Assembly: GCF_002113885.1 (NCBI RefSeq)
Contig: NW_018404492.1
Location: forward strand, 3,097,109-3,161,108
Reading direction: 5' to 3'
DNA from: Mizuhopecten yessoensis
Taxonomy: Eukaryota
Length of the DNA stretch: 64,000 nucleotides
A model generated the notes under the pieces. That model was not told where the DNA came from. It saw only the letters and a program-made list of their open reading frames with translations, and did not search any database. The position numbers and the translations under genes were made by a program. This document shows positions 247 through 63,445 of this stretch, in pieces (position 1 is the stretch's first letter; each line of letters begins with the position of its first letter).

Positions 247-455
247 AGAAGCAGATATTCCCTGCGTGATTATCAGGGGTGTAGCTAAGAGTGCTGGGTA
301 CGAGGTAGGGGATGACGAGTCCAAAGTAAGAGAACTAAATAATCGTTGGGCTGGAGTGTCTGTGGCGGGTGAGTGGAGAATTGTTTTCCCACTTTGGGCT
401 TTCTCCGCTATTGCTGGACATAGTACTGGAAAATATACTCTCGTCGAATCAAAAG
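247..455 (+). CDS. KY/hillarin/LTD-1-like transglutaminase-like protein, first exon visible (gene starts upstream of window)
   Basis: Acceptor ttttcaaacag|247, donor 455|gtaag. Reads EADIPCVIIRGVAKSAGYEVGD...NNRWAGVSVAGEWRIVFPLWA, the TGase-like core of KY/hillarin proteins. Full model join(247..455,861..1792,2668..2833,2990..3270,3629..3823,5203..5262) has all-GT-AG introns with consistent phases (1,0,1,0,0). Confidence 0.85.
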
Positions 456-860
456 GTAAGGAAAAAGATGATTTGACAGATCGTATCTAAAAGCAAGCTT
501 TCATTTTGTAGAAACTGTCATGTTGACAAATCATGTATGTGTAAAAATAAAAACAAAAAAACTTCATTTTTACACATTTCATTAAATTCAAATTGGTAAT
601 GAGGGCTATTTCACATATCATATATCGAAAGTGTATATAATGTTGCTATTACACTACAAAGTCAGCGTTAATATATGATTAATTAGATTCCCTACCGAGT
701 GGTGCTGGCTTATTATGATGATCTAATTCGTGTTAGTGAGTTTTCAACGTTTCAACAGGGCCAACGATCGGGTAAACAAAGGGGTGCCCACAATGTTTTG
801 GTGTGCTATGTAAGTGATTTACTGGTTTTGATTAACCGATCACAATTGTTCTCTTTGTAG

Positions 861-1792
861 GAAAAGCAGCTCGAGAGAAGGAAAAGAGGTCGACAGGAGA
901 GAATATTGTTCAGCTAAATGAATATTATTTCCTGACTGACCCTGAAGATTTTGTGAATGTCGCTATGGCTACCGATCCAAGATGGCAGTTCATTGGAAAG
1001 CAATTCAATCTGGAACAATTCTGTAATATTCCGTTTCTCCGCCAGAGCTACTTTAATCGTAATGTGGAAATAACTTCGGGATTTAAATCATGTTTGCATT
1101 CTGAATACGGCGTGGTGAAGGTTGGATTCAAAGCAAGAAATGAGAAATGGGAAGGTTTCTTGACATACAAATTATACTTTAATGACGAAGAATCCGAATC
1201 AGTCTTGCCAACAGATTTGCAGCTGGACAGGTATGTTGTAATGGAGCGGAATTTTGAAAAATGGACATTTAATGTTAGATGCCCTGTCACCGGAGTGTAC
1301 AAATTGAGTATTAATTCCAAATCAAGCACATCAAATGATATATCGCTTTGCGACTTCAAAATGTTCTGCGATGAAGTGACGGAGGGTGGTACCAAAGCTC
1401 TTCCTTTGGATGTCGGTACAATTGGCTGGGGTCCCAGTAATGAAATGGTGAAGGCGGGGCTAACAACACCATCACAAAGTAAAGGAATCGTCAAGGCCAC
1501 GGCCAAAAAGAAAGTAAACTTCAGTTTTACTTGTACGAAAACAGTTTCCATAAGGACAGTCCTTGTTCACAACGAAACATCCTCAGAGGAACTTCAGTCA
1601 TATGTGTCTCATAAACATGACAAAAGTTCCAACAAGTTGAATGTATCAGTGTGTGTGCCCGATGAAGGGGAGTATGCACTGCAGATACTCACCAAAGACA
1701 AAAACACGAACAAAGAACTGAACGCATGTAACTACATTATCTCTACTGAACCGACACCACAACAAAAGAAGAAGAAAAAAAAGAAGCGGGAG
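861..1792 (+). CDS. KY/hillarin-like protein, large exon (NEYYFLTDP motif plus beta-rich KY-type C-terminal domains)
   Basis: Acceptor ctctttgtag|861, donor gag|gtaggt at 1792. Contains ORF 953-1825 with QLNEYYFLTDPEDF, DPRWQ, CPVTGVYKLSI, IGWGP and PDEGEYALQI. Confidence 0.88.
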
Positions 1793-2667
1793 GTAGGTGA
1801 CAGAAATGTACATGCTGGTTCGTGAATGCTTAAAGTTTAGCAAGACGATTATTAGTAAGTAACATATTTCAGCAGGATTAAAACTGGACCATATGTGAAA
1901 TTTATTAGAGTCATAGTAAACTTCATTTTATATACAGAAAAGACTCTTGAATGCAGTTTTCATCAGATTAGTGTTTAACTGGATGACTTGGCTAACGTAC
2001 GTATGGATTGTGTCTTTTGAAATTAAAAATATGTTGAATACACAAGAAACAACAAGAGAATACCGAAGTTTCAATAAAATCATAATTCGAACTCGACATC
2101 GATAAAACTAGGGTAAATATTATGAAATGAACGGTAGATCTACACGGATACCATTGCAAACAACAAAGATAATTAGACCAGGTATCCCGGAAGAGTAAGC
2201 GTACTTTGCTAGGTCAAAGCCAAAAAATGTTGCGTTCTTACATCGAAAATTCGACATCGACAACAACACCACAAGGCACACTAATGAGCATAATTAAATA
2301 ACATCAACCCCTTTATCACACAAAGAAATAGTTATTTCCCAATGAGTCCACGTCACGGTGCCTACCGCTTCCATAGTCTTGAATACCGAACCAAAAACCG
2401 TAGGTAGGGGAAGCAAAGCAGACTAAATGATTTGTATGGCTGGAAAAACGTAGGGTTCTACAGGGTTTGGTTTTGTCAAGATTGTTTTTTTAATTAAATG
2501 AATTTCATATTATTTATAAACCAAACATATCGTTTATATGAAGTCGATCGATGAGGATAATATTGAAATAAAGGGCAATTGATCAACGGAACAGTTAGTA
2601 ACGTACGACAATCCGGTTTACTTCTTCATACATTCCTTAGAGTTATAATGCCTGCTATATTTTACAG

Positions 2668-2833
2668 AACGTGACTGAAAGGAAGGCAAGAGATGATTTG
2701 AAGAAGGCATCGACTGGAAACGATTTGGAAATGTTATCAATATTTATAGTTAAGTTCCAGAGGATGGGTTTGGATGATAAGGGTGATTTAGAAATTGCTC
2801 TTAAAAGACAAAACTTTCTTGTGTTAGAGAAAG
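2668..2833 (+). CDS. KY/hillarin-like protein, helical exon
   Basis: tttacag|AAC GTG ACT ... AAA G|gtacgt; 166 nt, in frame with neighbours; same size in the duplicate (13506-13671). Confidence 0.85.
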
Positions 2834-2989
2834 GTACGTATTTCCTCTTTTAAACATAATGCTAACGTGTTGAAAATGCACGCTTTCGTACGTCTGTATT
2901 TATACACTTGTTTCGCCTTGCTTTCGAAGATTCTATAGTATGCTGCAGGTTATGTAGTATATATAATATCTGATATTGTTATTTCAAAG

Positions 2990-3270
2990 GTCTGAACGAA
3001 GCAATTATGAGGCGTTATATTGACGTTCTCGATACTGCAATTGGAAACGCAGAGAAGTCAAAGTTCAAGTCTCAGCTTGCACCAAAGATCAAAGAGGCGG
3101 ATCAGGTGAGGAAGGATCTGAACAAACTGAACAGATTTGCACACGACATACTGGCAATGCAGCAACCCACGGTGTCTGAGCTCCACCGCTACAAGATACC
3201 AAAACCCCCGATAGTGGACGTGATGGTGGCTACCTTCACACTACTTGGAGAATCAAAAGATAACCTAAAG
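2990..3270 (+). CDS. KY/hillarin-like protein, exon starting the dynein-MTBD-like region
   Basis: tcaaag|GT CTG ... AAG|gtaatt; 281 nt; ...SELHRYKIPKPPIVDVMVATFTLLGES; same size in the duplicate (13818-14098). Confidence 0.85.
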
Positions 3271-3628
3271 GTAATTCCCTGGTAATAGCAATAATTCAAA
3301 CTCTAAACGTCTTATAGCACAAAGGTATATCAAATATATCTGCAACTTAAAAATCCCAATTTCGTTTATATTTGTGTATTCCCATGTGTTTTGATGGATC
3401 CTCAGTCATTGCTGAACTTTTGTAAAGACATCGAGTTCTGAATTTGTTCTTGTGTATTGACGGTATGATACATATTTGCCTTTGTTTTGTAATTATACGT
3501 CAACAAATGGCTTTTTTAAAAGGATCGTGAAACAAATTTTAAAATTCCTGAAAGCAATTCTACATAACTGCCTTTCTTAAATTCTAAACTTTCCTAATGT
3601 ATTCTATACATATTGTATACTGTTCTAG

Positions 3629-3823
3629 GTTTGGAAGGGCATACAGACCTTGTTGAGGAAACTCGGTCTTAAATCCGTAATAAGTCGTGTCCGGCAGTTT
3701 CCTGAAAAACAAGCTCAGTATGTTGATGAGAGTACCGCGATGGAAGTCCAGGACATGATCCGGGTATATGACGAGGACACAGTCCGGCTTTGTAGTCCTG
3801 CTGCTGGAACCTTTTACGTCTGG
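3629..3823 (+). CDS. KY/hillarin-like protein, penultimate exon
   Basis: ttctag|GTT TGG ... TGG|gtaagt; 195 nt; VWKGIQTLL...VRLCSPAAGTFYVW. Confidence 0.85.
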
Positions 3824-5202
3824 GTAAGTACATGCTTTGGCCTTTCAATTGCTTACTTACAGCACGCCAATATATACTTGTGAATGAATATAAATGACCA
3901 TAAATATATAAAAACATGCGGTTTTTATATCAATCATTAATGCACGAGAAAGTAACATAAAACTAGACTTTAAGCACTGTATACGAACTCAAAGGACTAA
4001 TAATAAATACAGCATGAGGGTGTTAACTATAAAACATGTTGTGTCCAGGACGGGTTGATGAATTGGTTGGACTTGAAAAAAACCCAATAAATGTTGATTT
4101 TTTATTTATTTTTTATCAATAATTGCAACTTATGAAAGTCCATTCTGATAGTTTGTCACATATTTTGGAGCTTGTGCGAGCCTACGTATTGACGTAATGT
4201 ACAGAAATATAGTCCGTCATTGAAGAGCCATCATTCAATATGATGATGTACGCTGATGTTTCAGTACAGCCAAATTATGAAGAAACAAAACAAACAAAAA
4301 ACACACATTTTAAATGCCATATCCAAGTTTTGTTGATGAATTCATACGTTGAAATATAAAAACTTCTCTGACGCGTCATCGCGGAAGAATCATCTCCAGA
4401 CGCGGTTCGCAGGCTCAGCTGCAAGTCTATGACAGTCATCTTTATACTAGCTCAAAGGGGAGAGTCGCTAATTCCGAGGTTTTACATTCGGAATGTGAAG
4501 CTGCAGTTATTGAATGTCGAATTAAACAATAAACCAGACGTTAAATAAAATGACAAAACGATTTGATATGGCAGTTGACTGTTCGACTACATGGCATATA
4601 TGACTTGACGACATGTGTGAGCAACGTTGTTTTCTATTTGTACCGGGGGATGACACTGACATAAGAGGCAGAATGGGTGTTGGAGGGAGAATTTCTAGGG
4701 CAATACTTCGATTGTCACTATCGCTAGCAAACGCTGATATTGTTTTGCTGATTGATCGTTTTGGTCGCTTGACCAATTTCTTGTGTAGCTTCATCAAAAA
4801 TGTAAAATCTCATATAAGTGGTATCTTCTTTGTTTGCAAGTTCTGCTAAAAGTGTCAATAGTTACTGAATATGAACGGGTAAAATTTGGTAGTTGCATTT
4901 ATTCAAAGTTGAATAGAAATTGAATTTTTTATAATTTAAAGACATTATGATATTTTCTACACTGTATATACATATATTTACAATATACATGGTTACACGT
5001 GTATAAGAAAAACTAAGGTTTTATTATTGACCGAACGTGTTAATATGACATCTAAAAGCTACATGTAATTATGTTCCATGTCAAACACGTATTCTAAATA
5101 GATAACCAGGACAATAAAATTAGACGTGCAAAAACAATTCATGACCTTTCAAATAATAAACAATACGATAATGAACTTCTATTGCTTTATTTTCTTTTGT
5201 AG

Positions 5203-5262
5203 GTTAACAACATTGTGACAGATATCATCGCGAACGGTAATACAAGTTATAAGGGTACATAG
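5203..5262 (+). CDS. KY/hillarin-like protein, terminal coding exon
   Basis: Polypyrimidine tract tttcttttgtag|GTT AAC AAC ATT...; VNNIVTDIIANGNTSYKGT-TAG; homologous to the exon at 15919. Confidence 0.75.
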   Translation, partial: VNNIVTDIIANGNTSYKGT

Positions 5263-5459: not shown

Positions 5460-5625
5460 GGTTGGTTTTGCATCTTACGTCCTATTAACAGCTATGGTAA
5501 TTTAAGGACATGTCAGGAGGTGGTTTTGGAGGAGAACCTGCGGTCAGTACATGACGACTGTCCAACATAGGCCTCCAACCTGCGACCATAGGCGGAAAGC
5601 TAGTGAAAATTTCATTTTAAATACA
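5460..5625 (-). mobile_element. Degenerate SINE fragment
   Basis: acgtcctattaacagctatgg...aaggac...acctgcggtcagtac... resembles the reverse complement of common mollusc tRNA-derived SINE bodies (recalled, not searched). Confidence 0.45.
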
Positions 5626-7369: not shown

Positions 7370-7686
7370 CCAATACATCTTTGTAGATCGGTAACTTCGT
7401 AACACAGATCAATACATCTTTGTAACTCGGTAACTTTGTAACACAGATCAATACATCTTTGTAAATCGGTAACCTTGTAACACAGATCAATACATCTTTG
7501 TAAATCAGTAACTTTATAACACAGCTCAATACATCTTTGTAAATCGGTAACTTGGTAACACAGATCAATACATCTTTGTAAATCGGTAACTTTGTAACAC
7601 AGATCGATACATCTTTGTAAATCGGTAACTTTGTAACACAGATCAATACATCTTTGTAAATCGGTAACTTTGTAACACAGATCAAT
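7370..7686. repeat. 39-bp minisatellite, ~8 copies
   Basis: Unit cacagatcaatacatctttgtaaatcggtaactttgtaa is repeated in tandem; it explains the 13-aa repeat ORF 7365-7685. Confidence 0.95.
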
Positions 7687-10600
7687 AGTTAGAGGTAATC
7701 ATCTACCTACTACCTCTTTTATTTAACATACGGTGATAAGCTAGATAATACTTTACACTTTAACAGCTCAATATCTCAACATCTTGATCACTCTTGCCAA
7801 AAAGGAGAAAGTTTATTCCTTCTTTAAAGGCAAATAATTCCATATTGATTTTTTTCTTTGCTGATTTAAATCTCTATGGCTATAACCGGCACAATTTCTT
7901 TTAAATAAAGAAAGCATTCCCCTCCAAGCTACATGTAACGATTAACGTCTATTTGCAATGTAGTTGTCACTTATGCATTTGTTTATTTGCTATAATTATT
8001 ATTTTATATATAAACACATCTACAATAACACTACTGGAATGTAAGTTGGCCTATCGTCAACTAAAAGCCAATTTTGCCGTATTAACACTACTTTAATAAT
8101 TATGTTTTTTTTCATCGAACTCGCGTGTCATAATATTTTTCCGAAAAGTAGAGCTAATTTCGCCATTCATATTGGTAATGGAATGCTTGCCTTTCAAACT
8201 CTGATAAAAAACCAACACTTCTCATGCTTAATGTTAATTCAGTCGTGAACAGCTTATAGTCCTATATAATTTCTTTCTGAGAAACGGATTTGCAGAACAG
8301 ATCAACGTGTATTAGAGTACAAAGGACGCCAACAAAGCGTATTGGCTATTAAAATCTAAAGTGTCATTGAGTTAAGGTAAAACGAAGGTGTCAATTTATC
8401 AACATAGACAAAATAAAAATAAAAATAGTTGTGTCCAAGGTGTACCTCTGTATAGATACCGACACAAGCCCGGTGGCATGGCGGATCATATGGAGTTACC
8501 AGACAAACCAACAAGCGCACTGAGTGAGTAATAGGTGAGCATATTCTTTGTTTTTCATGCACACGTAAAGGATTTGTTATAACATCCCTGGTAAAACTTT
8601 CGATATCAGTATTTTCTTATCTTTCATTAGGATGATTTTATTAATTAATCACATAATATGTATAAGATTACTTTTTTAGATGAAAAGATGAACACCGTAA
8701 TCGTCACTCGCTTTACAATTAAATATATATATACATTTACACGCATAATTGAAAATTTGATTTTTTTTATTCACATCAATAACAGTGCATTTTAAGTAAG
8801 GAGTACTGAAGTAGATGTTGTTTGCATGTTTTTGGTTTATCGTCCTAGCAACAGATACTGTCATAATGAAAACGGGTGCGGGAGCCACCACAAAAAAAGT
8901 AGAGACGAGTGGGGAGAAAAGAAAAACAAATATACATATCACAAGTGGTGCAAGGGACAGCAAATCATGTTTGGTTTCTTTAATATCCACTCAGCAAAAG
9001 ACAAAGAAGATAACTCCAGATTCTGCAGGGGTTCAACATTATTCGCATCGTAAGAACACACGCAGTGGGATACAGAAGGACTACACTTTCCTCGAACCTG
9101 CTGGGGTTATACATCAATACAGACCATAAGTTTTTGTTTAATTGTTATTAAAGGGATTATCTATTTAAATCCCAGTTCTTGGCAAATGAGTCTGTTGAAT
9201 ATTAGACCACAATTAACATGCAATGCCATTTCATGTTGTTCTGCCTTTTGATTTTATGTCCCTTCGATCTCTGTTGTTGTCTTATAGTGACATGTTTCAA
9301 CCGCTTTCTTGTAAGTAGATTAACATTTTAATATTACTTAAAACAGTTTGGTTCTGAAGAATATTTTATGTTTTTTGGCGGCTGCAGCTTTTGTGAAAGA
9401 AATTATCAATCTTGAAACAGATTTTGGAAAAAATGTTTCGCAAATATTGGTAATGTGAGCAAATATTTTTGGGGTTCAGGATGTATCTTATTTTGCATGA
9501 AATGCGATTGTATATTTAGCAGTAAAATATAATATAATATTCTGTCTCATCGTAAATACAAAAGAGTCCATCGTAAAGAGTCCATATTTTAAGTGGATAG
9601 CCAAAGCCACATGGACTGAAGGACACTAAAACAAGCAAAAAGACATCAGAAACACCCACAAAGAACACTGATTAAGAATCGGGCAGCTTCAGGAGGGTTC
9701 TGAACCACATGTGATAACCGGGATGATGTAACTGACAAACGATCTAAGACATATACAGTACTCTTTATTTATGGTAGACAGTGAAATGGCTTCGGAAATA
9801 TACATCGACGTAGCTCTGGAAAAAAGTGTGTTCTTCGTAGGAAAATATATATATAAAAAGATGGTTTAATGTAGTATTTGGGATCTGCAATGCATCTAAT
9901 CTCCGGACTAAATAGCCCTTGTCTAAATGATTGTGTGTGGTATAGACCGACATATCATATCTAGATCTAAAAGTTTATCAGATATTGATAAGCTGACTTC
10001 TACAATCAATGGGAAATAGGTCAAGGATATGCGAATTGTTTGTTGTGGTTTTTCTTAGTCCAGATAAAAAAATATGACGCTGGTATTTTCATTAGCAAAA
10101 CATGCCGTATATACCGTTATCAACGAGACAATTTAGTCTTATTTTTGTCAACAAGTGTGCATCTTTAACTCTGGAGTATATGGCTTTTATTTGTAACTAA
10201 ATATATACGACAGTTCGTGAATCCATAAAACATAACCGGTAGATTAAGATATTGTTCGACAAAATGATCAGAACCCAAGACAGTCTATCATAGCCCTACA
10301 ATTTTAGCTTCCTTTTGCATCTTTGTTTCTTTCTTAAGTTCTTAAGAAATGCAGAGTCAGTGAAGTAGAGGTATATTGTATAAATGGAAAGCCAAATCAG
10401 AGGAGATATCTGTTTCATATGTACAGTCAGAACCATAGAGGATGGGGTGTGGTTCAAGTAGCAGTACCGATATTGGCACGGACAACCTGGTGGAGCCTCA
10501 GACAGATCCGGTACGTAACACATAATTACCTTCACGTTGCACTGAATCAGGTATATGGAAACCTCAGCTTACCAACATCAATTAAGAAAAGGGTCATTTA

Positions 10601-11319: not shown

Positions 11320-12275
11320 ATGTACGTAACCGACAACAGTGAAGCTTAATAAGCATGCAGTGTAATCTTTCAGAAGTGTATGTAAACCAGTGGCAAGTAC
11401 TTCTACTTTAACTTCTAAATGGTACTGACCAACTTCAACAACTTGAAGATAAAATGTCAGACGAGGAGTGAAACATGGAAAGAGATTGTTTTTAAAAGAT
11501 ACGAGATGGTCTAATTTGCGTTTGAAAAGTGATGGTAGAGGGCTGATTTGAATAATTCCGTTGTGGGGCTCGAAATAATGTCAGGTGGGAGTTTATTCCA
11601 CTCGGGTATAGTTCGAGGGCAGAATGAGCCTTTCTGGTCTGGGTTTTTGAGTGGGGAATTTGATACGAAAACTGGTGGTTTGTTCGGGATTTTCTAACTG
11701 TAGGGATTAATCTGTCTGATTTTACGATAGCGACTTTCTGGTTTGCAATGTTATGAAGCATGGTCAGACGAGCATCTCTACGTCTATCTGCTAGAGGGCG
11801 CAGCTTTAGGTGGTCCAACATTTCTGACACACTGGAGGCACGATTGTTGTACCTGTGCTTATTGAGCACATAACGCGCTACCCTTCGCTTGACCATTTCC
11901 AACTTGTCAATATTTGTTTGGGTGTGAGGGTCCCATACTGTACAGGCATACCCAAGTGATGGTCGAACTAATGATTTATATGCCTGTACTTTGGCTGATG
12001 TTGAGCCATTTTAAGATTTCGTCTTAAAAAGCCTAGCGTAGAATATGCTTTTGGGCAGATAGTATTTATATGTGAATCCCATTCAAGGTCAGATGATAGT
12101 GTTACACCCAGATACTTGGCCTGACTAAGATGTTCCTGTATGTGTCCATGTAAAGTATAATTATGGACTATTTTTGTTTTGTTTTTAGTCACCGACAACA
12201 CATTGCATTTATTTGGGTGGAATATAATTTTCCATGTATTTTCCCAGAGCGCTAGTTTGTCAAGATCTTTTTTAA
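11320..12275 (-). mobile_element. 5'-truncated non-LTR retrotransposon (CR1-like RT C-terminus), frameshifted
   Basis: AKYLGVTLSSDLEWDSHI...TLGFLRRNL; WDPHTQTNIDKLEMVKRRVARYV...LADRRRDARL split across frames. Confidence 0.85.
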
Positions 12276-12580
12276 AGTGAAGTATAACATTTACAGAGTT
12301 CGTTCTTAAGTCCTACTAATTTTATAGAGCTTCTAGGATACTCGTATGTCCTTTTGAAAGATAATATATAGACACCATATTGTTCGGGGGCTAATAAAGA
12401 GCTTGGTAAATCAACCGGGTGTGTGTTTTACCAATTACAAGAATATAATGCTTTTTTCGGTTTGTTGTAAGATTACTTATTGCATGTAACGTATTGTCCC
12501 TCTAACAAAGCTTATAAATAAACAGCGAATGAGGCCCAAATATAAATGGGTATTCTAATTCATTTGCGACAATATAACCA

Positions 12581-24606: not shown

Positions 24607-27201
24607 ATGGAATCTCAAGATTCAATTGGCGAGCTACTTACACATGCCATAGATTTTGCCAATGTCATGAGCAACTCAGTGGATAGCATTTATCGGCCCA
24701 TTGCAGAGGAAGCCGTTGCCTATGGCAAGCGTCTCAATGTGGATGTGGTGAAATGTGGCAGTCATGCTGAGCGTTTGTATCTCCCCTACTTCAGCAGAGC
24801 GAACGATGATGCAATATGGGCGATTGACGCCAGTACAGATATAGATATGATGTTTGTGTTTGAAAACTATCATGTAGTTTCAGACGTGGAAAAATCACAT
24901 ATGAAAACTGACATCATTCAATATCAATTAGTGGAAGCAGCCCATCCAGGGTACTTCTTCATAATTCCTTCAAAAGATCTGTCTAGCGAGGACGTTACAA
25001 AACTTACAGTGTCACAGGTCCAGAATATTGCGTTATCGAGTGAAACGTTGAAGAGGCAATTAGAAGAATCTATCAAGCACAGCAGGAAAGGGGCAATCAA
25101 TCTTATATTTATGGAAACACCGACTCTGAATGGACCATCGGTTACCTTCGAGTCTCGTATGAACAGTGGAGTAATGGTTTCAATTGACTGCGTCTTCGGT
25201 GTGAAATGCTCATCGTGGCCAAAACAGCTGGACAACTTCTTCACTAGGGAAAGACATTGTGAATGGCCATGCGTCACACTACTGGGAGAAATTAGAGAAC
25301 AGGGGTGTCATCTGGTGGCTACCGGGGCACACGGCAGCTGCTTACGCCCCTTCGAGTGGAGATTATCGTCAACAAGGGCAGAGAAAATGTTAGCATGGTC
25401 TTTATCAGAAAAACAACGCCTTGCATATCAGATTGCAAAGTCGTTGATCAAATCACACGACAAGACGAAATGTATCGCATCCTACTACGTTAAGACGGCT
25501 CTTTTCTGGCTTTGTGAAGAACGTCAGCAAAGCGTCTGGACGGCATCCTCAAATCTTGAGAATATAAAATGCATACTGGAAAAAATATTTCATTTCTTTG
25601 CCAACAAAAATGTTCCAAACTATTTTGTAGAAGAAAACAATCTTGTCGACCACTTTGAAGACGAGATATTCGTGCATGCTATTGAGGGTCTTGTGGAGCT
25701 GAATGAAATGTTACTACCCAGACTTGCACAACTTTTACAACGCGTGTCAGTTATGCCAGTGGAGTTTCAGCAAACCCCAGCAGAAATGATTACATCGGAA
25801 AATTCAAAAGCGTTACTTGAGTATTTGTGTGTTAACTTTTGTTTTGGAAGTATAGCTCACACAATTTTATCTCAGATAGAAAACAAAACGCATGTCAACT
25901 ATTTGTACTTGGCTGAAACTATGTTCAAACATCTGACAAGTTCATCACACGTCGAACAAATTGACACAACTGTGAAACACGCAACAAATGAGCGTTTATC
26001 GTGCCAAGAGGTAAACAAGGACCAGACGCAAGACGTGTTATTGAACAAGATGTGGTCTCTATCAAGGTCAGGCTTACATTCTGCATGCAGTCTTCTAGAA
26101 AATATAATCCAATACTTCCAGTCAAAGGAATCCGACATGGAAATAATTTGGAAACTTTGTGTAGAACTGGAAAATATTGCAGCTACCCTTTTGAATGGTT
26201 ATTGTCAGCCACAAAATGCAGGAACAACTGTTGTAAATGACTGTATTTATTTGCTGGACAGAAGCGCGCATCTGCATCATGAGTATGCCTTCACATACAC
26301 ACAGAAATATTGGAAACAGTATCCTCGATATCGTATAGAACCAACAAATAATCCAAACAAACTCTCATTTTATTTCTTGGAAATGTGGATAATATTGCTT
26401 ATCAAATATCAACGAGAGGGTAACTGCCAATTTGGGATCATAGGTCGAGGGAACAAAGACAACATGCGACTTCCAATCTGTGTTCGACGACTGGTGGATT
26501 TCATGCTTTTCTATGACAATGATAAAACATGGGTTCTTTTGCAGATCGATTCAGCCTTGTTTGGTGGGAAACCAATTGCGAACTCCCTAAAGATAAAATG
26601 TATTCAGCATTCATCTACAAACTTGAAAATGGACGGGTTAATCAATTTAACAAAACTGAAAATTCGTGCGAAAGCATACAGGACGGACGTAGAAAAGGGC
26701 CACCTGCAGGTGGAACTTGGCAAACTGTGTTGCATCAAAGGAAAACAGTGCAACTACTCAGAGGACCAATCTAAATGGCACAGCCGGTCTCAGGAATATT
26801 TCAGAGATGCTCTCAGTTCTTGCCCCTCGGACATATCAGTGAAAGTTGATTTTGCGGCTTTTTTGTTTACAACCAACCGTAATAATGAAAGCATTGGCCT
26901 TCTTCAAGACGTCTTCACATGTGCAGGGGAAGGAACCACTGTGAATACGTACAATATCAACACATACCGTACCCTCCCTGAAGGGTTACAAGAACTCGTA
27001 GGCAACAAATTCCCAATAGTCATACCATCACTTTTGATCGGGTGCTACTACATTCTTGCAACTTACAAAACTATAAAGATGTCACGAGATCATTCTTTAT
27101 TTGGCAAAATAGTGGCTTGTCTAAAGGATGCAGTTTCTTCAAGTGACGAGGATACTCGGAAGCTAGGGCAGCACATAATTACAGCTTTCTTATCTCACTA
27201 A
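24607..27201 (+). CDS. Mab-21/cGAS-like receptor (cGLR-family nucleotidyltransferase) with long helical/TPR-like C-terminus, 864 aa
   Basis: Uninterrupted ORF. NTase motifs KCGSHAE...TDIDMMF and SIDCVFG. Mab-21 motifs GCHLVA, EWRLSSTRAEKML, SYYVKTALFWLCE, VPNYFVEENNL. TPR-like helices at ~aa 700-780. Probable short 5'UTR intron 24438-24491; AATAAA at 27433. Confidence 0.92.
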   Translation: MESQDSIGELLTHAIDFANVMSNSVDSIYRPIAEEAVAYGKRLNVDVVKCGSHAERLYLPYFSRANDDAIWAIDASTDIDMMFVFENYHVVSDVEKSHMKTDIIQYQLVEAAHPGYFFIIPSKDLSSEDVTKLTVSQVQNIALSSETLKRQLEESIKHSRKGAINLIFMETPTLNGPSVTFESRMNSGVMVSIDCVFGVKCSSWPKQLDNFFTRERHCEWPCVTLLGEIREQGCHLVATGAHGSCLRPFEWRLSSTRAEKMLAWSLSEKQRLAYQIAKSLIKSHDKTKCIASYYVKTALFWLCEERQQSVWTASSNLENIKCILEKIFHFFANKNVPNYFVEENNLVDHFEDEIFVHAIEGLVELNEMLLPRLAQLLQRVSVMPVEFQQTPAEMITSENSKALLEYLCVNFCFGSIAHTILSQIENKTHVNYLYLAETMFKHLTSSSHVEQIDTTVKHATNERLSCQEVNKDQTQDVLLNKMWSLSRSGLHSACSLLENIIQYFQSKESDMEIIWKLCVELENIAATLLNGYCQPQNAGTTVVNDCIYLLDRSAHLHHEYAFTYTQKYWKQYPRYRIEPTNNPNKLSFYFLEMWIILLIKYQREGNCQFGIIGRGNKDNMRLPICVRRLVDFMLFYDNDKTWVLLQIDSALFGGKPIANSLKIKCIQHSSTNLKMDGLINLTKLKIRAKAYRTDVEKGHLQVELGKLCCIKGKQCNYSEDQSKWHSRSQEYFRDALSSCPSDISVKVDFAAFLFTTNRNNESIGLLQDVFTCAGEGTTVNTYNINTYRTLPEGLQELVGNKFPIVIPSLLIGCYYILATYKTIKMSRDHSLFGKIVACLKDAVSSSDEDTRKLGQHIITAFLSH

Positions 27202-49039: not shown

Positions 49040-49663
49040 GAGGTGTACATGATAGTCTTGAAAGCAGTTTTCCAACTTATTCTGGTAGAACCACACTTTT
49101 AAATGGAAGTGTTGCACTTGTCACCATTTCCTGACAGAATACGTGATCAAGATGTATCCTTTGTGTAAAAACACTCTGTTTTCGTCCAAACAACAAAGTC
49201 GCAATATTCCGCATTTGATAAAAGTAGCTGACACTGCACTTAATAAAAATAAGCATGGTTACGCTTTACGCAGAGTTGGTTCCAGACAATCTATGGCATC
49301 TGTTATTGCTGCATCTTTCTGACAGTAAGGACATTTCACCTCAAGTATAACCTCTCCACAGCAGTCACAGTAGGCAACTTCATCTGGAGATGCACCGGTA
49401 AAGGGATATCTTGGATTGATGATGATCATGAGGCCACAATCCCTCAAATGGAAATTCTCATGCATCTCTGTCATTTCCTGCTGGTATTGTTCTTTTGCTG
49501 TCTTCTTGTGATGACATCCCCACTTCGTAGCTGAATTTGAAAAGCTTTTGGATGTAGGGTAGCAAATGTCCTTCACGAGACTCAGTGATGGGGCTTTAGG
49601 AGAGTCCTGCAGGCTCCTTCCATTCTTGATGCTGTTATCTGTCCTGCACGAAACCGAAACCAT
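49040..49663 (-). pseudogene. YqaJ/lambda-exonuclease-like ORF, disrupted
   Basis: ATKWG, CGL..INPRYPFTGASPD, CDCCG, LEVKCPY, then HAYFY*VQCQL...YCDFVVWT after a frameshift. Confidence 0.82.
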
Positions 49664-51799: not shown

Positions 51800-53050
51800 A
51801 GTAAATCTACTCTTACTAAATACTCGTCAAATTTATTTAAACAAATTTAAGTCTTTAAAAACATCAAGTTATATGAATGCATAACCACGGACTTTATCCA
51901 ATTCCGTGTACAATATCTAATTTGAACATAAACTTAGTCCCGTGCAATTGAATAGATTCTTGATATATGAAATCCATTTAAAATCAGCGAAATCATTTTC
52001 ATGTAATGCATAAGCTTGTACATTATACTAGACAATTTATTTTCACCTGTAATTAGTTTATACCAAAACATTATCATTCTAGATTTAATTTCATTATTCA
52101 GAGGGTACTTAACCGTTTCACCATATACCATTATATTATATTTGCTGTGGAGCTTCGTATGTTTAAAATTCTTTTACAAAACTGTACATGTAATTTCTCA
52201 ATCATATTGGTATTTTTAAACACCAAAATTACAAATGGATTGGGGATAATAAAATATCAAACAATTTTAATTGTAGGTCAATTGGTAAAATAATATTTCT
52301 ATTTTTTTTATATAATGCATACATTGCTTTTTGAGCCTGTTCAACAAGTTTTTTTCTTGCTTTACAGAAACTGCCATTAAAATGAAACAGCAGTCCTAGA
52401 AACGAGTAGCTTTCATGTGTTTGCAACTCTTCACCAAAAAGAGTAAAACGAAAATTGTGTGCAATTACATTTCCTTTTTTCAAAGATAACAACTTTACTT
52501 TTATTGAGATTAACTTTAAGTTTCCAAATAATACAGTAAGTTTCAAATTCACGGAAAGCATTCTGTAGACCTTTAGCTGTTTCTGACATAACAACTGTGT
52601 CATCTGCATATGTAGCAGAATAAATAATTTAACAAATATACCCATGCGTTCTTGAAATAAATTGTCAATATACTGGAGTTGGTCAACTTTACTTTGCATG
52701 AAAAAATCTTCTAAATCATTTAAATATATTGAGAACAAAAATGGGGAGAGATTTTCACCTTGTTTTACCCCGACGTGACAAGTGAAAAAATCAGTCATAC
52801 CATTGCTAGATTTTACGCAAGTATTAGTGTTTGCATACAGATTAATTATAGCATTAAATATATTTCCTGTGATATAATTCTTTGATAATTTCTTCCATAA
52901 ACCTACCCTCCAAACAGTGTCAAACGTTTTTCTGAAATCAATGAATGAACAGAATAGCTTTTTATTTTTTGAAAAGTATATAGATATTAAAGCATGAAGG
53001 ATAAATATATTTTTAGTTGTAGAGTAGCCTTTCCTAAAACCAGCTAGAAC
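51800..53050 (-). mobile_element. Non-LTR retrotransposon RT fragment, frameshifted
   Basis: FIDFRKTFDTVWRVGLW, GVKQGENLSPFLFSIYLNDL, frameshifted YADD, YSFLG, MVYGE. Confidence 0.88.
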
Positions 53051-54863
53051 ATTGGAACAAGAAGTCTATTGTCTACTATTACGGAAATAGATAATCAGTT
53101 TTGACCACATCGGCCTTTGAAAAAAATTGAAACATAAAGCGTTTCGCCGTGTTTCTTTCTTCTTTACATATACAATTAATATACAGTATTGTTTTTTTCT
53201 AAAACAGATAAGGCCTAACAATCCAACATATGGACTTCAATATTTATTTACGTACAACACGTATTTCAATTAAATTATATTTACATATAGAATTATATTT
53301 AATTTTCAGATTGATGTCGCTTTTTTGTGTTGGAAAATTTCATATTTTATTTTATTTTAAGATCGTAGACGTGATGGGATTATAATCTACACATTAACAC
53401 CAATTAATTCACTCAAAATATATTCATGCTATTTATTAAAAGTTGAGTATAAGTTATGAAGTTATTAAAATTTAGTTATCATAATGTCATTTCCGATGTT
53501 TCAGGTGTTATGGCATCGCAATAACAATGTCATATATATAAATGAGAAAATAACCCAGATACATATTTATTATATATGTAATATATAATTCTCAGAACAA
53601 CCCTTTTTATAGAATAAAACAGAGACAAATATATGTATATGCGAACCTCGGCCTGGCAATTTATATATATATATATAGAATAAAAATAAATTTTTCAGAT
53701 CGTCCGCTAGGCCTTTCTGCCTTCTAGGGCTTCTTCAGGCGGATAAATATATATATTTAGTCCTATCCTGCCCCGTTCCTGTAATTGCAATTCTTTTATC
53801 AAATATACCTTATACCCGATAAGGATAATTAGATATCTACAATAAATATATATAAATAAGTCCGATCCTGCCCCGTTTCTGTCCATTCCTGTAAATCGTC
53901 GCCCGTTCTTGCCCGATCCATATCAATACAATACTTTTAATTCGTTGCAATCGTTTTATCAAATGACGTATCTTGTACCCGATAAAAAAGATATAATAAT
54001 ATAAATATATATAATTTAGTCCGATTCTGCCCCGATCATGTCATTGCAATCCTTTTATCAAATATATCTTATACCCGATAATGATACTTAAATGTATCTA
54101 ATATATAAATTCATTAATGTATATATAATAATTAATAGATTTCTGCCCGTTCCTGCCCGTTCCTGTAAATCGTCGAACCCCTATAGTCACGGCATTTCGG
54201 TGTTGTTTTCTGCACCAAATCGCATATTTCCAGATAGGATGTGACATATAGAAGTAAATAACTTCAAGAAATGTAATATTTCACAGTAATAAAGAAGTAT
54301 TTGGTTCATAACTGGGTCGTATGGTGTAGTATTGGGTCATAATCACGGCAATTCGGTGATGTTTTCGGCACCAAATCGCATATTTCCCGATAAAATATGG
54401 CAGATGCAAGTAAATAACGTCTACAAAGGTGATATTTCACAGTAATAAAGAAGTATTTGGTTCATAACTATTGGGTGGTATTGGGTAGTATTGGGAAATT
54501 AGACGCTCCCTAATTTTAAATCTATGTCGCTCTCACCGTGGACATGTTCGGTCTTGCATAATCCCCTCCACGCTTACGGTGATGTGTATTGCATTATCGC
54601 CTATTTACCTCCACATATTAATCCCTCCACACATTCTTTCCTATTGTGTTGCATATTAATCCCTCCACACATTCCATTGGTTTCCGTCTCCTATTGCGTC
54701 ATACATGCATATCTAGGTCAAAGGTCTGTTTTACCGGCTGGGCCTCCACACATTTCATAGGTTTTCCCTCCCCTATTGCGTCATACATGCATATCTAGGT
54801 CAAAAGGTCACCCTCCACACCCTCCACAAAATGTGTAGAGGCCTAGCCGGTAAAATACCACTA

Positions 54864-55046
54864 CTGCTTCCACTAATTGATATTGACTGATGTCAGAGTC
54901 TGTTTCCATATGTGAGTTTTCCACGTCTGAAACTACATGAAAGTTTTCAAACACAAACATCATATATATATCTGTACTGGCGTCAATCGCCAAAATTGCA
55001 TCATCGTTCGCTCTGCTGAAGTAGGGAGGATACAAACGCTCAGCAT
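54864..55046 (-). pseudogene. Truncated, internally deleted copy of the cGLR 5' coding region
   Basis: AERLYPPYFSRANDDAILAIDASTDIYMMFV...QYQLVEA matches cGLR aa ~54-111. Start codon and GS motif are deleted, DID is changed to DIY, and the rest of the gene is absent. Confidence 0.9.
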
Positions 55047-55835
55047 TTCTTATTTTCTGGATGCTTGTTGTGATCAAAATATCCAATTTTCACAGCTGCT
55101 GTATTTATTACATACATCGAGCAGTCGAGAAAAAATACAAAGGCTTTTCATTAAAATACAATTTGTACACAGTAATCTAAATACGACTTGCAAAAACAAG
55201 CACATCATGATAACAGCAAAATGTTACGAGGAAAATATTGGTGAAATTATTTTCATATTACGTTTATGAAAAAACAGCATGTATTATTTTCCGAGTTTAA
55301 GTATACATTAACTCTAAATATCTATTGGATACTTTGTTCACAACTCACTGATTGAAATAGCAAACTAAGTGGGACACACTGTAGACATAGAGTAACAAAT
55401 GAGATTGCATAAGTAAAATGGATACGGGAAGTTTGAGAGTGCGGTTGTGAATCCGCTGTTAAATCATTTAATATAGCTTTCTTTGGCATTTACAGGTCAG
55501 ATTCCACATGGCTAATGACGTATCGAGTCCATTAAACAATGAGAATATGCATGTATGCATTTTCCATCATTGTAATCGTGATACAGTGTATTTCATTTAG
55601 TCTACTATGGTACTTTAATACTGGTCTATAAAGGATCCATGCCATGCAGGCAACTTTTCTTCTATCACCACCTTGCTCTTCCTTTTTGGTGTTACCCCCC
55701 ACCCCCACACCACACCACCCCCACTCCCACCCAAAAAAAAGTATCTGAGGCTACGTCACACTCCTATCATCAAGCCTATTTATTATGCTGGATAGTACGT
55801 TTTGCGTAAGTCTACATTTTCCTACTTTGAATGTA

Positions 55836-57011
55836 CAGTTGGGAGCAAACTTAACTTGATATATAGTGCACTTTGTAGTGCAAACGTAGTGAACAAGGAA
55901 CTGCACTTGACAAAAACATTGAAGTGCACTCCAGTTTACTTAAGTGTTAACTCCAGTTCACTTAAATGTTACTCCAGTTCACTTCAGTGTTAGCTCCAGT
56001 GCACTACAGTGTTTACCAAAGTTTAAAAGACTGAAGTACATATTTCAATAATTGTTTATAATGAAAAGGGTTTCTTTGTGATATGAAAATTGAAAGAGAA
56101 AAGAAAGAATCATTCAACTGAATATTTCATAATATCGAATCAACGATACACATGTATTTTTTCTATTGCTTAAAATTTCAACTGAACATGTACATGTACA
56201 AAAAAGGAATGTGTACACTATCTCTGGTGATTATAGAAAATTTATAGATAGCTGTACTATTTCAAATGAAAAAGTTTAAAAGTATCATAGTAAGTTAAAT
56301 CACATTTCATATCAATGTTGTAGTGTCAGGATAGGGGATCAGTATCTGTTATGTGATATGGGTAAATGTGGTCAGTTTTCCTATAATTTTATACTTTTTA
56401 TGAAAGGTTTTTCTATAACACAACATCAATAGAGTAATTCGCTTATTTATTTTATATAAACAAGTCAAGAAAATATAAAATGTAAAACAAAAGCTTATAT
56501 CATGGCATGGACTATATAGATAAAAGGTAAATATCAAGCTAAAGATGTGTAATTAATCTAAGTTTGTTAATCCAAAGTTGCCTGAAGAAAAAATCTTTGA
56601 GTTAGTCTGATTTTGATATATTCTTTGTTATATATATATACACATCAGGTACATGTACATGCTGATGGTTGACTAAGAAAATACATCCCAAACCACCACC
56701 CCCTCCCCTGGTCTACTGTGTTCCCCTCACCAGTGTAGCAGGTATACAGCTGGCCTGGTGGTATTGTAATGCATTGCCACTTGTTAAAGTGATGATAAAA
56801 GTCATGGTTGCAGGGTGCAAGCACCTGTAGGTAAAGTTATATATATATGTACAAAAATGAAATAAGTTGATTGATTTACTAATAAAAAAAAACCAAATCA
56901 ATTAAGTTTCACAGGGAACTTCAAGTTTTAATCATACAGTTACAACTTTACTTCAGTGGCAGATTTAAAGATTGTTACCAGGGCAATGTAACCACCCCCT
57001 GACACATATTG

Positions 57012-57042
<31 letters not shown>

Positions 57043-58908
57043 TCACTGTTCTGTTCTTTATTTGCCAAAAGCCCTTATGCTTATAGGTACATACAAATAA
57101 ACATATAACATTCTCTAAACATAATTAGAATAGGCAGGAGAGTGACATCAAAGTATACATAAAACACCGTTCAATAATGTGCATATAACAATACTTAATT
57201 TAACGAATTACAATAATGGAACACCACAATACATAAACATTAAATTAACACCTCTTAAAAGCTAAATATAAATATTTTCCTAAATTGGATAGCTCTCTAA
57301 CATTATTATCTATATGGTATCTACCTGAGAATATATTGGCAATGATCACCCACTGACCATTCACCTGCGGTCACATGGGATTCTGATGGGCTGAACACCT
57401 TGTGTTAAGGCAATTAATTTTGTCAATTTATCCAGCCCATTGTTTGTCCAGTAGATACATAGGTAAATCAGTACACGATTACAGGTAAGATACTGTGGCT
57501 ACCCCTTTGTCCAGAAATGACAGCCTCGGGCACAATTCTATTTCAATACAGTGCCTTTGAAGTGTTTCACGCTACCTTATCCCTCAAATGGTTTACAAAC
57601 TGGGTGTTACATAAATAGTCAACACTAGTTGAAAACACACCCCAGCATCAATTAATTGGTCACTGAAACATGATAGAGCCTTTTTGTACATGTACGTTCA
57701 GGTTCCATAGTAGCCACAGGGCACACTGATGTTACAATAAAAGAACCAAAAGGTCACTTAGGAAATTAAAATTTTGAAAAAATCAAGATAAATCGGTAAG
57801 GATTATGAGAAGGTTCGATCTTACCTTTTTAAAACACACTCAAATCTGTTCTTTAAAAAAATATCCAAGGTCTTGGAGTTGTTAACATTATAGTTCATTT
57901 ATCTTTTTTTTTAAAACAGAATTACATACACACACATATATACATCACTATGGTATTTTTTATGCATAAATCATCTATTCTTTGGATAGGTGATCTGACA
58001 AAACCATTAGGTGTTTATTTTGATTGGATTATACACGTTTTTAATTTTTAGACATATTCAAAGTTAATTCTTATAATTTATTTTCATTGTTGACATGTAG
58101 TTAAATGTATTTTCTTACTAGAAACACAGACTTATAGAGAATCTAGTTTCGTACTAGAAAACTACACACTTCCTAGAATCAATATTATTTGTTTTTTAGT
58201 GGGGTTTTTTAAGAAAGTCTAAGTTTACTTGATAACTTGATTTACAAAGAGAGAAATGAAAAAAATAAGACAATTTTCTCCTGTGCTAGCTTCACGGTTC
58301 AGCGGGTGAAATTTACCTGTGGAAAAGTCAATTTGGATACCTACATATTTAATTCTTAACAAATAAATGTTGTGTTGTAATTCAGATCTTCATTCCTGTA
58401 ACTACAGTACATCATGAATGAGACAATACATATATTCATAGTATTTGTTCTTATTCACCTACATGAGCTCTCCATTTTTCTTCTTCAAAAAGAATATGCA
58501 GAAAAAGACTCACTATCATATACTGATAATATAATGCTATATTTGTATACTTAATGTAGACGTAATACTAGCACTGTGCTACTTATAAAGGAACTTCAAC
58601 GGTGATTATGTCTTTTATGTCTATTAACTTTAAACCACCAATACATGTATATATATGTACCATGGGTCCAAGTCGGTGCATGTACTAATAATCATATAGG
58701 TCATCACGCTCTATAGTTATTATGCTATTTTCCTAAAAGGATACTAAGAAAATTACCTTGTGAACGGTAGTTAACTCCAGTGGACATTGATGTGAACTCC
58801 AGTTAATTATTTCAGTGTTAACTCCAGTTCACAAGCTAGTGAGTTGGAGTTCACTTTTCTTGTTAACTCCAGTGCACTAGGCAATCAAGTTAAGTTTGCT
58901 GCCAGCTG
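55836..58908. mobile_element. Longer mirror copy of the Tc1/mariner-like non-autonomous element
   Basis: TA|CAGTTGGGAGCAAACTTAACTTGAT ... ATCAAGTTAAGTTTGCTGCCAGCTG|TA; ~0.9 kb longer than the left-arm copy. Confidence 0.72.
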
Positions 58909-61900: not shown

Positions 61901-62323
61901 TTTCGGTTTTTTTATATCTGTATTATTCCAAATCAAAGTCCCACAATATAACTTTTTCTTTTCAGAATTGATTTTTTAATCACAGTTATAGTGATACCGG
62001 AGTAAAACAATTTCTAACACCAAGTTACATTTTTGGCAGTGTGTCAGGATTCCTTAAGCAGACATTGATTAAACATTTTGGAATATGAATCATGATGATG
62101 TTAGACACCAAGACCATTGGAAGCAATAATTAGAAATAACCAATCATTTTTAAATTAATTGTCAAATTTTCAAAATGATTTTACCTCGATTTTTCATTAC
62201 ACGCACTGCCTTTAACGACATCTTTAAGCTTTTACTATTGGTGGAGGGGATACAACTCACATTTACAATGGTTAAGTTCCTGATTCAGTTAAGCTTGATA
62301 CAGTGCGTTTTAGGCAAAAAACT

Positions 62324-62600
62324 GATACAGGGTAGCTTACACAAGGTAACAGATACAGATTAGAAACAAATACAGGGTAGCTTACACAAGGTAACAGATA
62401 CGGGGTAGCTTATACAAGGTAACAGATACGGGGTAGCCTACACAAAGTAATTAATACCGGGGAGCTTACATAAAGAAGCTGATACATGGGTCTTACACAC
62501 TGTAACTGATTTAGCGTCGCTGATAAATAATAATTCAAACAGCATAGCAGATACTAAGTAACTGAAATAGGATAGCTGACAGAATATAACTGATACAGAA
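62324..62600. repeat. Degenerate 28-bp minisatellite
   Basis: Unit atacagggtagcttacacaaggtaacag, decaying rightwards. Confidence 0.75.
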
Positions 62601-63319
62601 CAGAAATATGGTAATATTTAAGTTCAAGTTTGTGGAGTTTATTTTATTTTAAGTCCCATCTTTTTTGGTTCTTTGTACACCTTATTATAAAAATCAACAC
62701 AAAGATGTATACATATGTTCGATTTCTGGCATTTAGAATAAATGCTCATTTTCGACAATTTAAGTGTTTGTTATTTTATCGACAAAAACATAGCAGAGTA
62801 TAACCTGTTTGTGCTGTTGGGTTTAATGCAGACTAAACACGATAATATAATTGTATTTATGCAATGCATAAAGTAATTTATATTATCTGGTTAGTATATG
62901 ATATTTTTATTTGTTATATTTTGTTGGTTCCGGATGGAGGATAACTTTCCGTTTTTGAAACTAGTCCATCCCTATAGAAGTAGTCACGTGATGTTTTGGT
63001 GTACTAAAGTCACGTGACCTGTGCAGAATATTTTTCCATGCTGACATTTTGAAAAATCTCCTTAAAAATCAGCTACCCTCCTCCTCCCCTATTTTGTATC
63101 CACCTTTATGTACTATTGTGTAAAAATGTAATTGTTGCACATCTTTGGTTTAAATTTTGTTTCATTTGTTGTACATCTTTTAATTACAAATGGTGCGTTT
63201 ATTTTGAAGCAAGCCCCATCTTTTTTGGTTCTTTGTACACCTTATTATAAAAATCAACACAAAGATGTATACATTGCAAAGTATCAGATACAGGTTAGCT
63301 CATACAAAGTATTTGATAG

Positions 63320-63445
63320 CGAAGGGGTCCTATGTAGAGGTAGTTTTAGTACCTTGGAAAATCCACGTGGTCGGTCAGATACTTTTTCACTTCCGATCTT
63401 GAAGTCGCACTCCAGCCATCCAGGTGAAAGGCTTGTGCGCTACTT
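63320..63445 (-). mobile_element. Degenerate SINE (V-domain-like) fragment
   Basis: Minus strand gcctttcacctgg...cgaccacgtggattttccaaggtact resembles a tRNA head plus V-type core (recalled). Confidence 0.4.

Follow-up and report, generated by a model that had tools for sequence, protein, structure and literature searches.

A predicted dynein-type microtubule-binding domain without a motor at the end of a KY/hillarin-like pseudo-transglutaminase from scallop

Work on the dynein microtubule-binding domain (MTBD) usually treats it as a component that functions only by way of its stalk and motor. A gene at the edge of a 64,000-nucleotide stretch of DNA from the scallop Mizuhopecten yessoensis (the window) raises the question of what such a domain might do by itself. 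An earlier note, made from the letters alone, had read it as a pseudo-transglutaminase of the KY/hillarin type joined through a helical linker to a dynein-type MTBD, potentially a tether between cortex and microtubules.

Gene structure and the transglutaminase-like part

The gene covers positions 247-5262 of the forward strand in six exons, all with AG acceptors, and its five introns are GT-AG (Table 1). The joined frame comprises 613 codons with one stop, at the end; the other two frames contain 38 and 49 stops. The 5' part of the gene lies beyond the window edge, and the 613-residue frame is thus N-terminally incomplete. The C-terminal peptides read earlier were found in this spliced frame where they had been placed. 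All five junctions are present in Logan contigs of run X1 and four in run X4, which belongs to a different study; both runs were called RNA-like from zero depth in bins lying wholly within introns, so that their RNA status is an automated guess. One contig of run X4 extends 556 letters upstream of the first exon in the window, and one is a mosaic of the window gene and its paralog. The last 122 residues are identical, letter for letter, to the M. yessoensis GenBank protein KP79_PYT15295 (P0161), which independently supports the joins of exons 4, 5 and 6. Searches were run exon by exon, the joined protein being translated and string-compared only; the whole-domain queries were natural proteins, namely P0161 and P0006, a Pecten relative that is 71% identical over the same 122 residues.

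Table 1. Positions in the window of the coding exons and of a partial gene copy
Feature	Position	Strand	Content
Exon 1 in window	247..455	+	C-terminal half of transglutaminase-like (KY/hillarin type) domain
Exon 2	861..1792	+	Two KY-like Ig domains (PF23265, best stretch ~1010-1381), lysine-rich end
Exon 3	2668..2833	+	All-helical linker, first part
Exon 4, portion	2990..3126	+	Remaining helical linker; terminal 25-residue helix in place of dynein distal CC1
Exon 4, portion	3127..3270	+	MTBD-like part 1: CC1 end, H1, H2
Exon 5	3629..3823	+	MTBD-like part 2: H3-H6, CC2 start
Exon 6 (last coding)	5203..5262	+	End of CC2-equivalent helix and stop
Headless partial copy of gene 3' half	12574..16040	+	Frameshifted Ig-exon remnant and open copies of the last four exons

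The encoded order is a transglutaminase-like domain, two KY-type Ig domains, the linker and an MTBD homologue of ~125 residues. Against Pfam, the Ig exon matched PF23265 over two stretches (E 1.2e-35), and exons 1, 3, 4 and 5 gave no meaningful match; PF01841 was matched in full-length relatives with E values of 7e-7 to 0.01 (0.0014 for the paralog P0170). The columns of His and Asp were placed by reference to 9CRN and FAP246; the catalytic His position of the window protein holds Asn (341-343) and the catalytic Asp position Phe (386-388). Among 37 aligned rows the His column is never His, and, apart from amphioxus and a single limpet protein, no row has Asp in its column. The Cys column lies upstream of the window; in the 36 relatives in which it could be seen it is never Cys, provided that it lies, as we assume, where the usual motif spacing puts it. 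A Cys-His-Asp triad is therefore not present at the positions compared, that is, His and Asp in the window protein and Cys in the 36 relatives. By its residues, the transglutaminase-like domain is predicted to be catalytically dead.

In KY, hillarin, LTD-1 and Cyk3, too, KY-type Ig domains (PF23265) follow a transglutaminase-like core (PF01841), and relatives of the scallop protein carry the database names 'hillarin-like', 'KY' and 'ltd-1-like'. Unlike hillarin and LTD-1, these relatives lack a LIM domain and have an acylation-type N-terminus; Pfam revealed neither LIM nor SH3 domains in the full-length relatives, P0170 included. We know of no KY, hillarin, LTD-1 or Cyk3 protein with a linker and MTBD at its C-terminus. 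Among solved structures, the transglutaminase-like domain matches FAP246 of the Chlamydomonas central apparatus best, over a 60-residue core only (7N6G; E 6e-11). FAP246 sits in a microtubule-based ciliary structure and, unlike the scallop protein, retains His and Asp where catalysis needs them; no MTBD match was reported for it. The transglutaminase-like domain of yeast Cyk3 is inactive as well (PMC3718969).

With PF23265 in the window, PF01841 in the relatives and the triad residues missing, the earlier assignment to a pseudo-transglutaminase of the KY/hillarin type holds. So does the proposed fusion, given one transcript in RNA-like contigs and the same domain order in many species. The earlier note did not name the two Ig domains as a part, nor did it mention the N-terminal acylation motif, the range outside molluscs or the existence of the linker and MTBD without the KY part.

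The C-terminal domain and the dynein stalk tip

A profile of 49 relatives searched against PDB sequences gave a best E value of 2.3e-11, and the best 60 rows were all dynein heavy-chain MTBD regions (one is mislabelled by name, but is a chain of 4583 residues, the size of a heavy chain). PF12777 was matched by 30 of the 49 members at E values up to 1 (best 8.9e-7; two above the curated cut-off), and P0161 adjoins PF12777 clusters in an ESM Atlas feature search (0.97-0.98). Single sequences yielded little: P0161 had no detectable dynein MTBD match in Pfam, exon 5 alone found nothing among PDB sequences, and a single mussel relative found only dynein-2 (E 0.11). Identity to dynein is 13-22%, and four columns of the module alignment are invariant and nine nearly so. 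At the family level, the similarity to dynein is far above chance.

The predicted fold agrees. The AlphaFold model of the Pecten relative, the closest one (pLDDT 89), superimposes on the mouse MTBD with a VIA Z of 16.0 (1.7 Å over 115 residues), whereas unrelated helical bundles reach a Z of about 5. Foldseek returned no E value below 0.001; of the 35 rows at the top of its list, 34 are dynein-type by title or length (TM by query 0.58-0.79). Shared with solved dynein MTBDs (5AYH, 3ERR, 6KIO, 6RZB) are the six-helix fold and the distal CC1/CC2 helices (dynein 3280-3408), with an rmsd of 1.7-2.2 Å, as well as the motifs E..PP, LG...W and S..A...W and the acidic H1 contact. In the alignment to 5AYH, the first matched model residue is 98, corresponding to dynein 3280. 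The model, a single conformation, resembles free dynein structures (Z 16.0/15.0) slightly more than bound ones (12.8), which may reflect prediction bias. As for the donor dynein class, profile scores of yeast cytoplasmic, inner-arm and dynein-2 chains overlap.

Absent are the AAA ring, the linker and the long coiled-coil stalk of the dynein heavy chain: Pfam detected no AAA+ ring in the full-length relatives (687-756 residues), and the window protein stops at CC2, where the dynein stalk would start. Its own linker is made of short helices (43-66, 69-80 and 89-113 in the model), not of a long antiparallel stalk, and has only generic helical bundles as structural matches (Z up to 8.2; atlas 0.79). 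The scallop family further differs from dynein in having no axonemal flap and a short basic insert after H3.

The profile and structure comparison that the earlier note had proposed for the C-terminal domain thus gave, with relatives as queries, a significant dynein MTBD match in sequence and a close one in fold. Its claims of a dynein-type MTBD without a motor (profile E value, Z, PF12777 matches, no AAA) and of a helical linker, all-helical in the model, are both borne out. On this sequence and model evidence, the C-terminal ~125 residues are homologous to the dynein MTBD.

The fold recurs in other proteins. Residues 462-586 of the Chlamydomonas radial-spoke chain 7JTK_C/7JRJ_I adopt it (Z 11.4, 2.3 Å over 118 residues) in a likewise motor-less protein; this domain is only 10% identical to that of scallop, belongs to the radial spoke and has other partner domains. 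We take the chain to be RSP2, which is a spoke-head component rather than a protein that binds the lattice. A motor-less MTBD-like arrangement is also seen in 9YA2_L of a Toxoplasma intraconoidal microtubule model (3.4 Å over 117 residues; no sequence similarity found), at a Z of 8.6 that falls in the grey zone for helical domains. From size and numbering, this chain is probably ICMAP2, which connects two microtubules and binds as a dimer between protofilaments with its globular domain on the microtubule surface, and the loss of which separates the two microtubules; the paper does not mention a likeness to dynein (PMC12819142).

Tubulin contacts and a possible membrane-to-microtubule tether

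We compared the salt-bridge residues of yeast dynein on H1, H3 and H6, namely K3117, E3122, R3124, R3152, R3159 and R3201, of which E3122 pairs with α-tubulin R402 (PMC7042235). The corresponding columns of the window protein read Q, E, H, K, R and L; an Arg adjoins the first-helix His, and another precedes the H6 site by one position. The Glu equivalent to E3122 (coded at 3178-3180) is present in 48 of the 49 family members. The R3124 column is Arg or Lys in 29/49 and His in 15/49, the K3117 column is Gln in 34/49, and the R3152 and R3201 columns are variable, so that equivalents of K3117, R3152 and R3201 are not conserved. Basic residues stand at the end of H3 in 39/49 and just ahead of the H6 arginine column in 36/49. 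Most members have one exact basic match out of five, and the net charge of the contact face is near neutral (+0.6 summed). Polar residues on H1, H3, the H3-H4 loop and H6 are more conserved than those elsewhere (entropy 2.1 versus 2.9 bits; 24 versus 41 columns, Mann-Whitney p 3e-4, the columns not being independent), and may be so for structural reasons. Judged from the aligned residues, contacts to tubulin are kept only in part.

We consider it somewhat more probable than not (about 55%) that the scallop protein is a motor-less, ATP-independent membrane-to-microtubule tether or scaffold. The N-terminus would be myristoylated and palmitoylated and would anchor the protein in the plasma membrane or that of a cilium; partners would be bound by the inactive transglutaminase and the Ig domains, as Rho1-GDP is by the inactive domain of yeast Cyk3; and the C-terminal domain would dock on the tubulin dimer through its H1/H3/H6 face in the manner of dynein, clustering on the membrane raising a weak affinity per molecule. 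Since CC2 ends at the C-terminus, there would be no motor-driven registry switch, and binding would be passive. Membrane attachment is favoured by the N-termini of the relatives: of 53 Met-starting carriers, 29 begin with MGxxxS/T, 19 with a Cys nearby, and the paralog (77-85% identical to the window protein) and an Argopecten relative begin with MGCGSS. A ciliated epithelium or cilium would be the likeliest site, a guess that draws on the taxonomic range, the acylation motif and FAP246 as an axonemal relative. For a tether we count homology and fold, the H1 Glu, the basic residues around the H3 and H6 sites, polar conservation on the H1/H3/H6 side, the acylation motif, retention of the module from sponge to amphioxus and the fold of 9YA2_L; against it, three of five basic contacts lost or shifted, the near-neutral face and the same fold in a radial-spoke chain.

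Alternatively, the fold may have been kept and re-used, its H1/H3/H6 face binding some acidic protein other than tubulin, a complex with a small GTPase or an acidic lipid; the protein would then be a hillarin/Cyk3-type scaffold, anchored in the membrane and active in signalling or at the cortex, without microtubule contact. Such re-use, which we hold to be possible although rather unlikely, would fit the lost or shifted equivalents of K3117, R3152 and R3201, the family-specific basic insert after H3 (columns 59-62 and 67-68), which dynein lacks, the occurrence of the fold in the radial-spoke chain, the tandem expansion of the scallop paralogs and the CARD domain of the amphioxus members, which hints at signalling. 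It accounts less well for a near-invariant surface Glu and for the concentration of conserved polar residues on the very helices that face tubulin, and dyneins themselves shift the basic residues of H3 (PMC7042235).

Switched binding is an improbable variant, in which the linker would shift the CC1-like against the terminal CC2-like helix upon tension, partner binding or, in EF-hand-like members, calcium, giving a motor-independent affinity switch; alternatively, the protein could compete for the lattice site as a brake of dynein. The linker accompanies the MTBD in every architecture seen, the model retains both distal stalk helices, high affinity needs movement of H1/CC1 only (PMC6629372), and EF-hand-like N-terminal segments were seen by eye, although not at Pfam significance, in sponge, sea-slug and orthonectid members (atlas cluster with EF-hand_6 16%); the one modelled conformation, nearer to free dynein, argues against it. 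An artefact or relic (exons wrongly joined, helices that resemble dynein by chance, or a leftover dynein piece with no function), to which the silent single sequences, the low identity and the mosaic contig might point, is largely refuted by junctions from two studies, the order shared by dozens of mollusc and amphioxus proteins, a profile with dyneins alone on top (E 2e-11), the Z of 16 and the invariant columns.

Family range and a partial duplicate

The survey across molluscs suggested earlier finds the KY-MTBD fusion, in the same order in dozens of proteins, in bivalves and gastropods, and in amphioxus too; linker and MTBD without the KY part occur in molluscs, an orthonectid and a sponge. 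From sponge to amphioxus, the folded part of the proteins ends, almost without exception, with this module or shortly after it. A match to P0015 was a repeat artefact and was left out. KY-fused members do not form one group in the module tree (3-5 changes), which is unrooted and hence does not fix the order of fusion and loss. Literature searches found no paper on hillarin with dynein, KY with a microtubule-binding domain, or a non-motor dynein MTBD; "MTBD-like" matches concern TTLL11 and are unrelated. The family is undescribed in the literature searched.

More tentatively, at what we judge to be close to even odds, this would be an ancient family of animal proteins, present in sponge, orthonectid, molluscs and amphioxus, whose MTBD escaped the motor and now serves lipid-anchored scaffolds as a portable module for binding the lattice, joining microtubules to the membrane of cilium or cortex; it might also have a motor-independent affinity switch or compete with dynein. 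If true, a stable motor-free MTBD that has persisted from early animals onward would reveal the domain's own capabilities and would be a natural test of the stalk-registry model. The scallop family is a candidate for the poorly known membrane-microtubule links of ciliated invertebrate cells, and KY/hillarin-type pseudoenzymes would gain a first possible direct tie to microtubules.

Downstream of the gene lies the partial copy listed in Table 1. Its frameshifted Ig-exon remnant spans 12574-12929, and its open exon copies (63-87% amino acid identity) lie at 13506-13670, 13820-14098, 14496-14690 and from 15919, the last of them reading through the position of the original stop. The window contains a single N, at 22427.

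C-terminal dynein-type domain

A search of 1.84 billion proteins with exon 4 of the KY-MTBD gene yielded 213 relatives, of which 49 complete C-terminal domains were aligned to build a profile. Among PDB sequences this profile matched yeast dynein best (6KIO, E 2.3e-11), followed by inner-arm dyneins (E 3e-9 to 3e-8), dynein-2 (4e-8) and mouse dynein-1 (7e-8); all of the 60 best matches were dynein-type. Thirty members matched the Pfam MT model with E ≤1, the strongest at 9e-7, and in the ESM Atlas the window's own 122 residues adjoin PF12777 clusters (0.97-0.98). The AlphaFold model of the domain from the Pecten relative (pLDDT 89) could be aligned to residues 3287-3404 of mouse dynein (5AYH; VIA, Z 16.0, 1.7 Å), compared with Z ≤5.8 for unrelated helical bundles; Foldseek and a second VIA pass agreed with this match. 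A model of linker plus MTBD (pLDDT 93) revealed five helices ahead of the MTBD and one terminal helix. The structural match spans dynein residues 3280-3408 and then ends; we take this stretch, bounded by two stalk prolines, to be the MTBD without the stalk. The earlier note's proposal of a motor-less protein carrying a dynein-type MTBD behind a helical linker is thus borne out, and the feature and its dynein homology are real. Alignment to dyneins showed that the family domain lacks the axonemal flap, a 13-residue insert in DNAH7 (PMC6629372).

Distribution and motor-less relatives

The fused architecture recurs in other molluscs: KY fusions occur in scallops, pearl oyster, freshwater mussels, clam, limpet, sea slug and snail, and also in several amphioxus species, whose proteins carry a CARD besides as many as eight Ig stretches. 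The linker+MTBD module is further present in short mollusc proteins, a chiton's among them, where a disordered N-terminus precedes it, and behind EF-hand-like segments (without Pfam confirmation) in Plakobranchus, the orthonectid Intoshia and the sponge Oscarella; the sponge protein lies above the Pfam MT cut-off. No vertebrate or ecdysozoan member was seen among 30 clusters looked up (two unnamed), a minor part of the matches. In an unrooted module tree the KY fusions do not form a single clade. No literature on this animal family was found in a search outside most subscription journals; the architecture is undescribed and the family old.

The motor-less MTBD fold as such is not categorically new. 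Motor-less chains of the same fold are present in a radial spoke (7JTK_C, Z 11.4), the bovine sperm axoneme (9FQR_Xl, Z 9.9), Toxoplasma (9YA2_L, Z 8.6) and a trypanosome (Z 7.1), and the ESM Atlas contains an oomycete Impact_N+MT cluster. 9YA2_L is probably ICMAP2, because its 162 modelled residues and numbering up to 1457 fit a protein of 1678 residues whose resolved globular part makes up 10% of the chain and lies on the microtubule surface (PMC12819142). ICMAP2 is required for holding two microtubules together, and the text of that paper does not mention dynein (PMC12819142). 9YA2_L, 7JTK_C, 9FQR_Xl and 9E5C_2e, chains with a dynein-MTBD-like fold that are not among the recognised dynein heavy chains, make up a candidate wider set of motor-less MTBD domains.

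Conserved surfaces and readings of function

The tubulin contacts of yeast dynein are made by K3117, E3122 and R3124 (H1), R3152 and R3159 (H3) and R3201 (H6) (PMC7042235). Placed on the family columns through the profile alignment, E3122 is kept in 48/49 members, K3117 is Q in 34/49, and R3124 is R/K in 29/49 and H in 15/49. The R3159 column holds G (23) or R (14 of 49) and is followed by K/R in 39; R3152 and R3201 fall on variable columns, the latter preceded by R/K in 36/49. The window protein has Q, E, H, K, R and L at the six positions, in the order of the yeast numbering. A basic stretch after H3 is specific to the family. Conservation is higher in the polar columns of H1, H3, H3-H4 and H6 than in the remainder (p 3e-4, for columns that are not independent and include residues that may be structural), and the summed charge of these columns is near neutral. 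The H1/H3/H6 face is under selection, for a partner that may be tubulin or another molecule.

Exon 2 encodes two KY-like Ig domains (Pfam), and full-length relatives show a weak transglutaminase-core match. The catalytic His and Asp columns were anchored on two profile matches of the transglutaminase-like domain: FAP246, a protein of the central apparatus in Chlamydomonas (E 6e-11), and 9CRN (E 1e-5). None of 37 aligned rows has His or Cys at the respective column, and Asp is absent as well outside amphioxus and a single limpet protein; the window protein has Asn at the His and Phe at the Asp column. The KY/hillarin-type assignment stands, and the domain is a pseudoenzyme. In yeast Cyk3, too, the domain is inactive, and there it binds Rho1-GDP; Drosophila hillarin localises to the cleavage furrow (PMC3718969).

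Among 53 carriers that start with Met, 29 open with MGxxxS/T, and a Cys lies close by in 19; the close paralog belongs to both groups. Starts of this kind are in general known to be myristoylated and palmitoylated. Most likely the protein would act as a tether or scaffold that is anchored by lipid and holds microtubules passively (probability about 0.55). Redeployment of the fold towards a different partner is a weaker contender; the motor-less folds in solved structures are a possible precedent for it and for a lattice binder alike. A switched or dynein-competing microtubule binder seems unlikely, and an artefact or relic very improbable.

Gene, paralogs and neighbourhood

The exons join into a single open frame of 613 residues, the 5' part lying outside the window. 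Similarity searches were run one exon at a time. In Logan contigs of runs X1 and X4 (two studies; RNA status guessed by the tool) exons have depth and entirely intronic bins have none; 5/5 junctions are present in X1 and 4/5 in X4. One X4 contig combines this gene's Ig exon with a linker exon (2668-2835) carrying residues of the paralog P0170, either an assembly mosaic or gene conversion. The Ig exon occurs in 14 RNA-like runs from five studies. Expression may be tissue-restricted, because the exon is missing from two runs of one of these studies and two raw RNA-seq runs contributed 0 and 1 reads (without a control stretch). GenBank annotation in Mizuhopecten yessoensis seems limited to a 122-residue C-terminal fragment, P0161 (KP79_PYT15295), equal to the end of the window protein.

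Full-length P0170 (756 residues) is 77-85% identical per exon. P0170, adjoined by a further KY-type gene, and P0161 each lie on a scaffold of 7,498,238 bases. More tandem KY-type paralogs occur at L002:1-1141, L002:10001-22918 and L001:29377-29505, in Mizuhopecten and probably Pecten; the family is therefore locally expanded in scallops. For use of the headless duplicate as an alternative cassette, no loose end at 1792 is listed in two contig sets, whose covered stretch ends at 5500. The duplicate's final exon continues beyond the position of the stop into a basic tail with Cys.

Features of the window
Feature	Position	Remarks
KY-MTBD gene, six coding exons	247-455, 861-1792, 2668-2833, 2990-3270, 3629-3823, 5203-5262	canonical splice sites
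78-bp tandem repeat	7371-7687	
Broken LINE-like stretch upstream of headless duplicate	11492-12201	minus; by eye
Headless duplicate of gene's 3' half	12574-16040	four open exons, splice sites intact
Large inverted duplication around cGAS-like gene	17154-24940 and 54864-63996	91-96% identity in pieces
864-residue single-exon ORF, Mab-21_C domain	24607-27201	E 1e-11
Minisatellite, period ~52 bp	35157-37702	
Direct tandem duplication, 2.7 kb	37688-40416 and 40422-43144	98% identity
Broken mobile-element-like ORFs	42306-43789, 44807-45988, 46776-47998, 49259-49663, 52229-52798	by eye
Fragment, second copy of cGAS-like gene	54808-55086	minus

The Mab-21_C ORF is predicted to be a cGAS-like receptor. 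The 2.7-kb duplication is possibly an assembly artefact. By eye, the mobile-element-like pieces resemble LINE reverse transcriptase, gag/protease and Harbinger/THAP transposase, and one is YqaJ-like.
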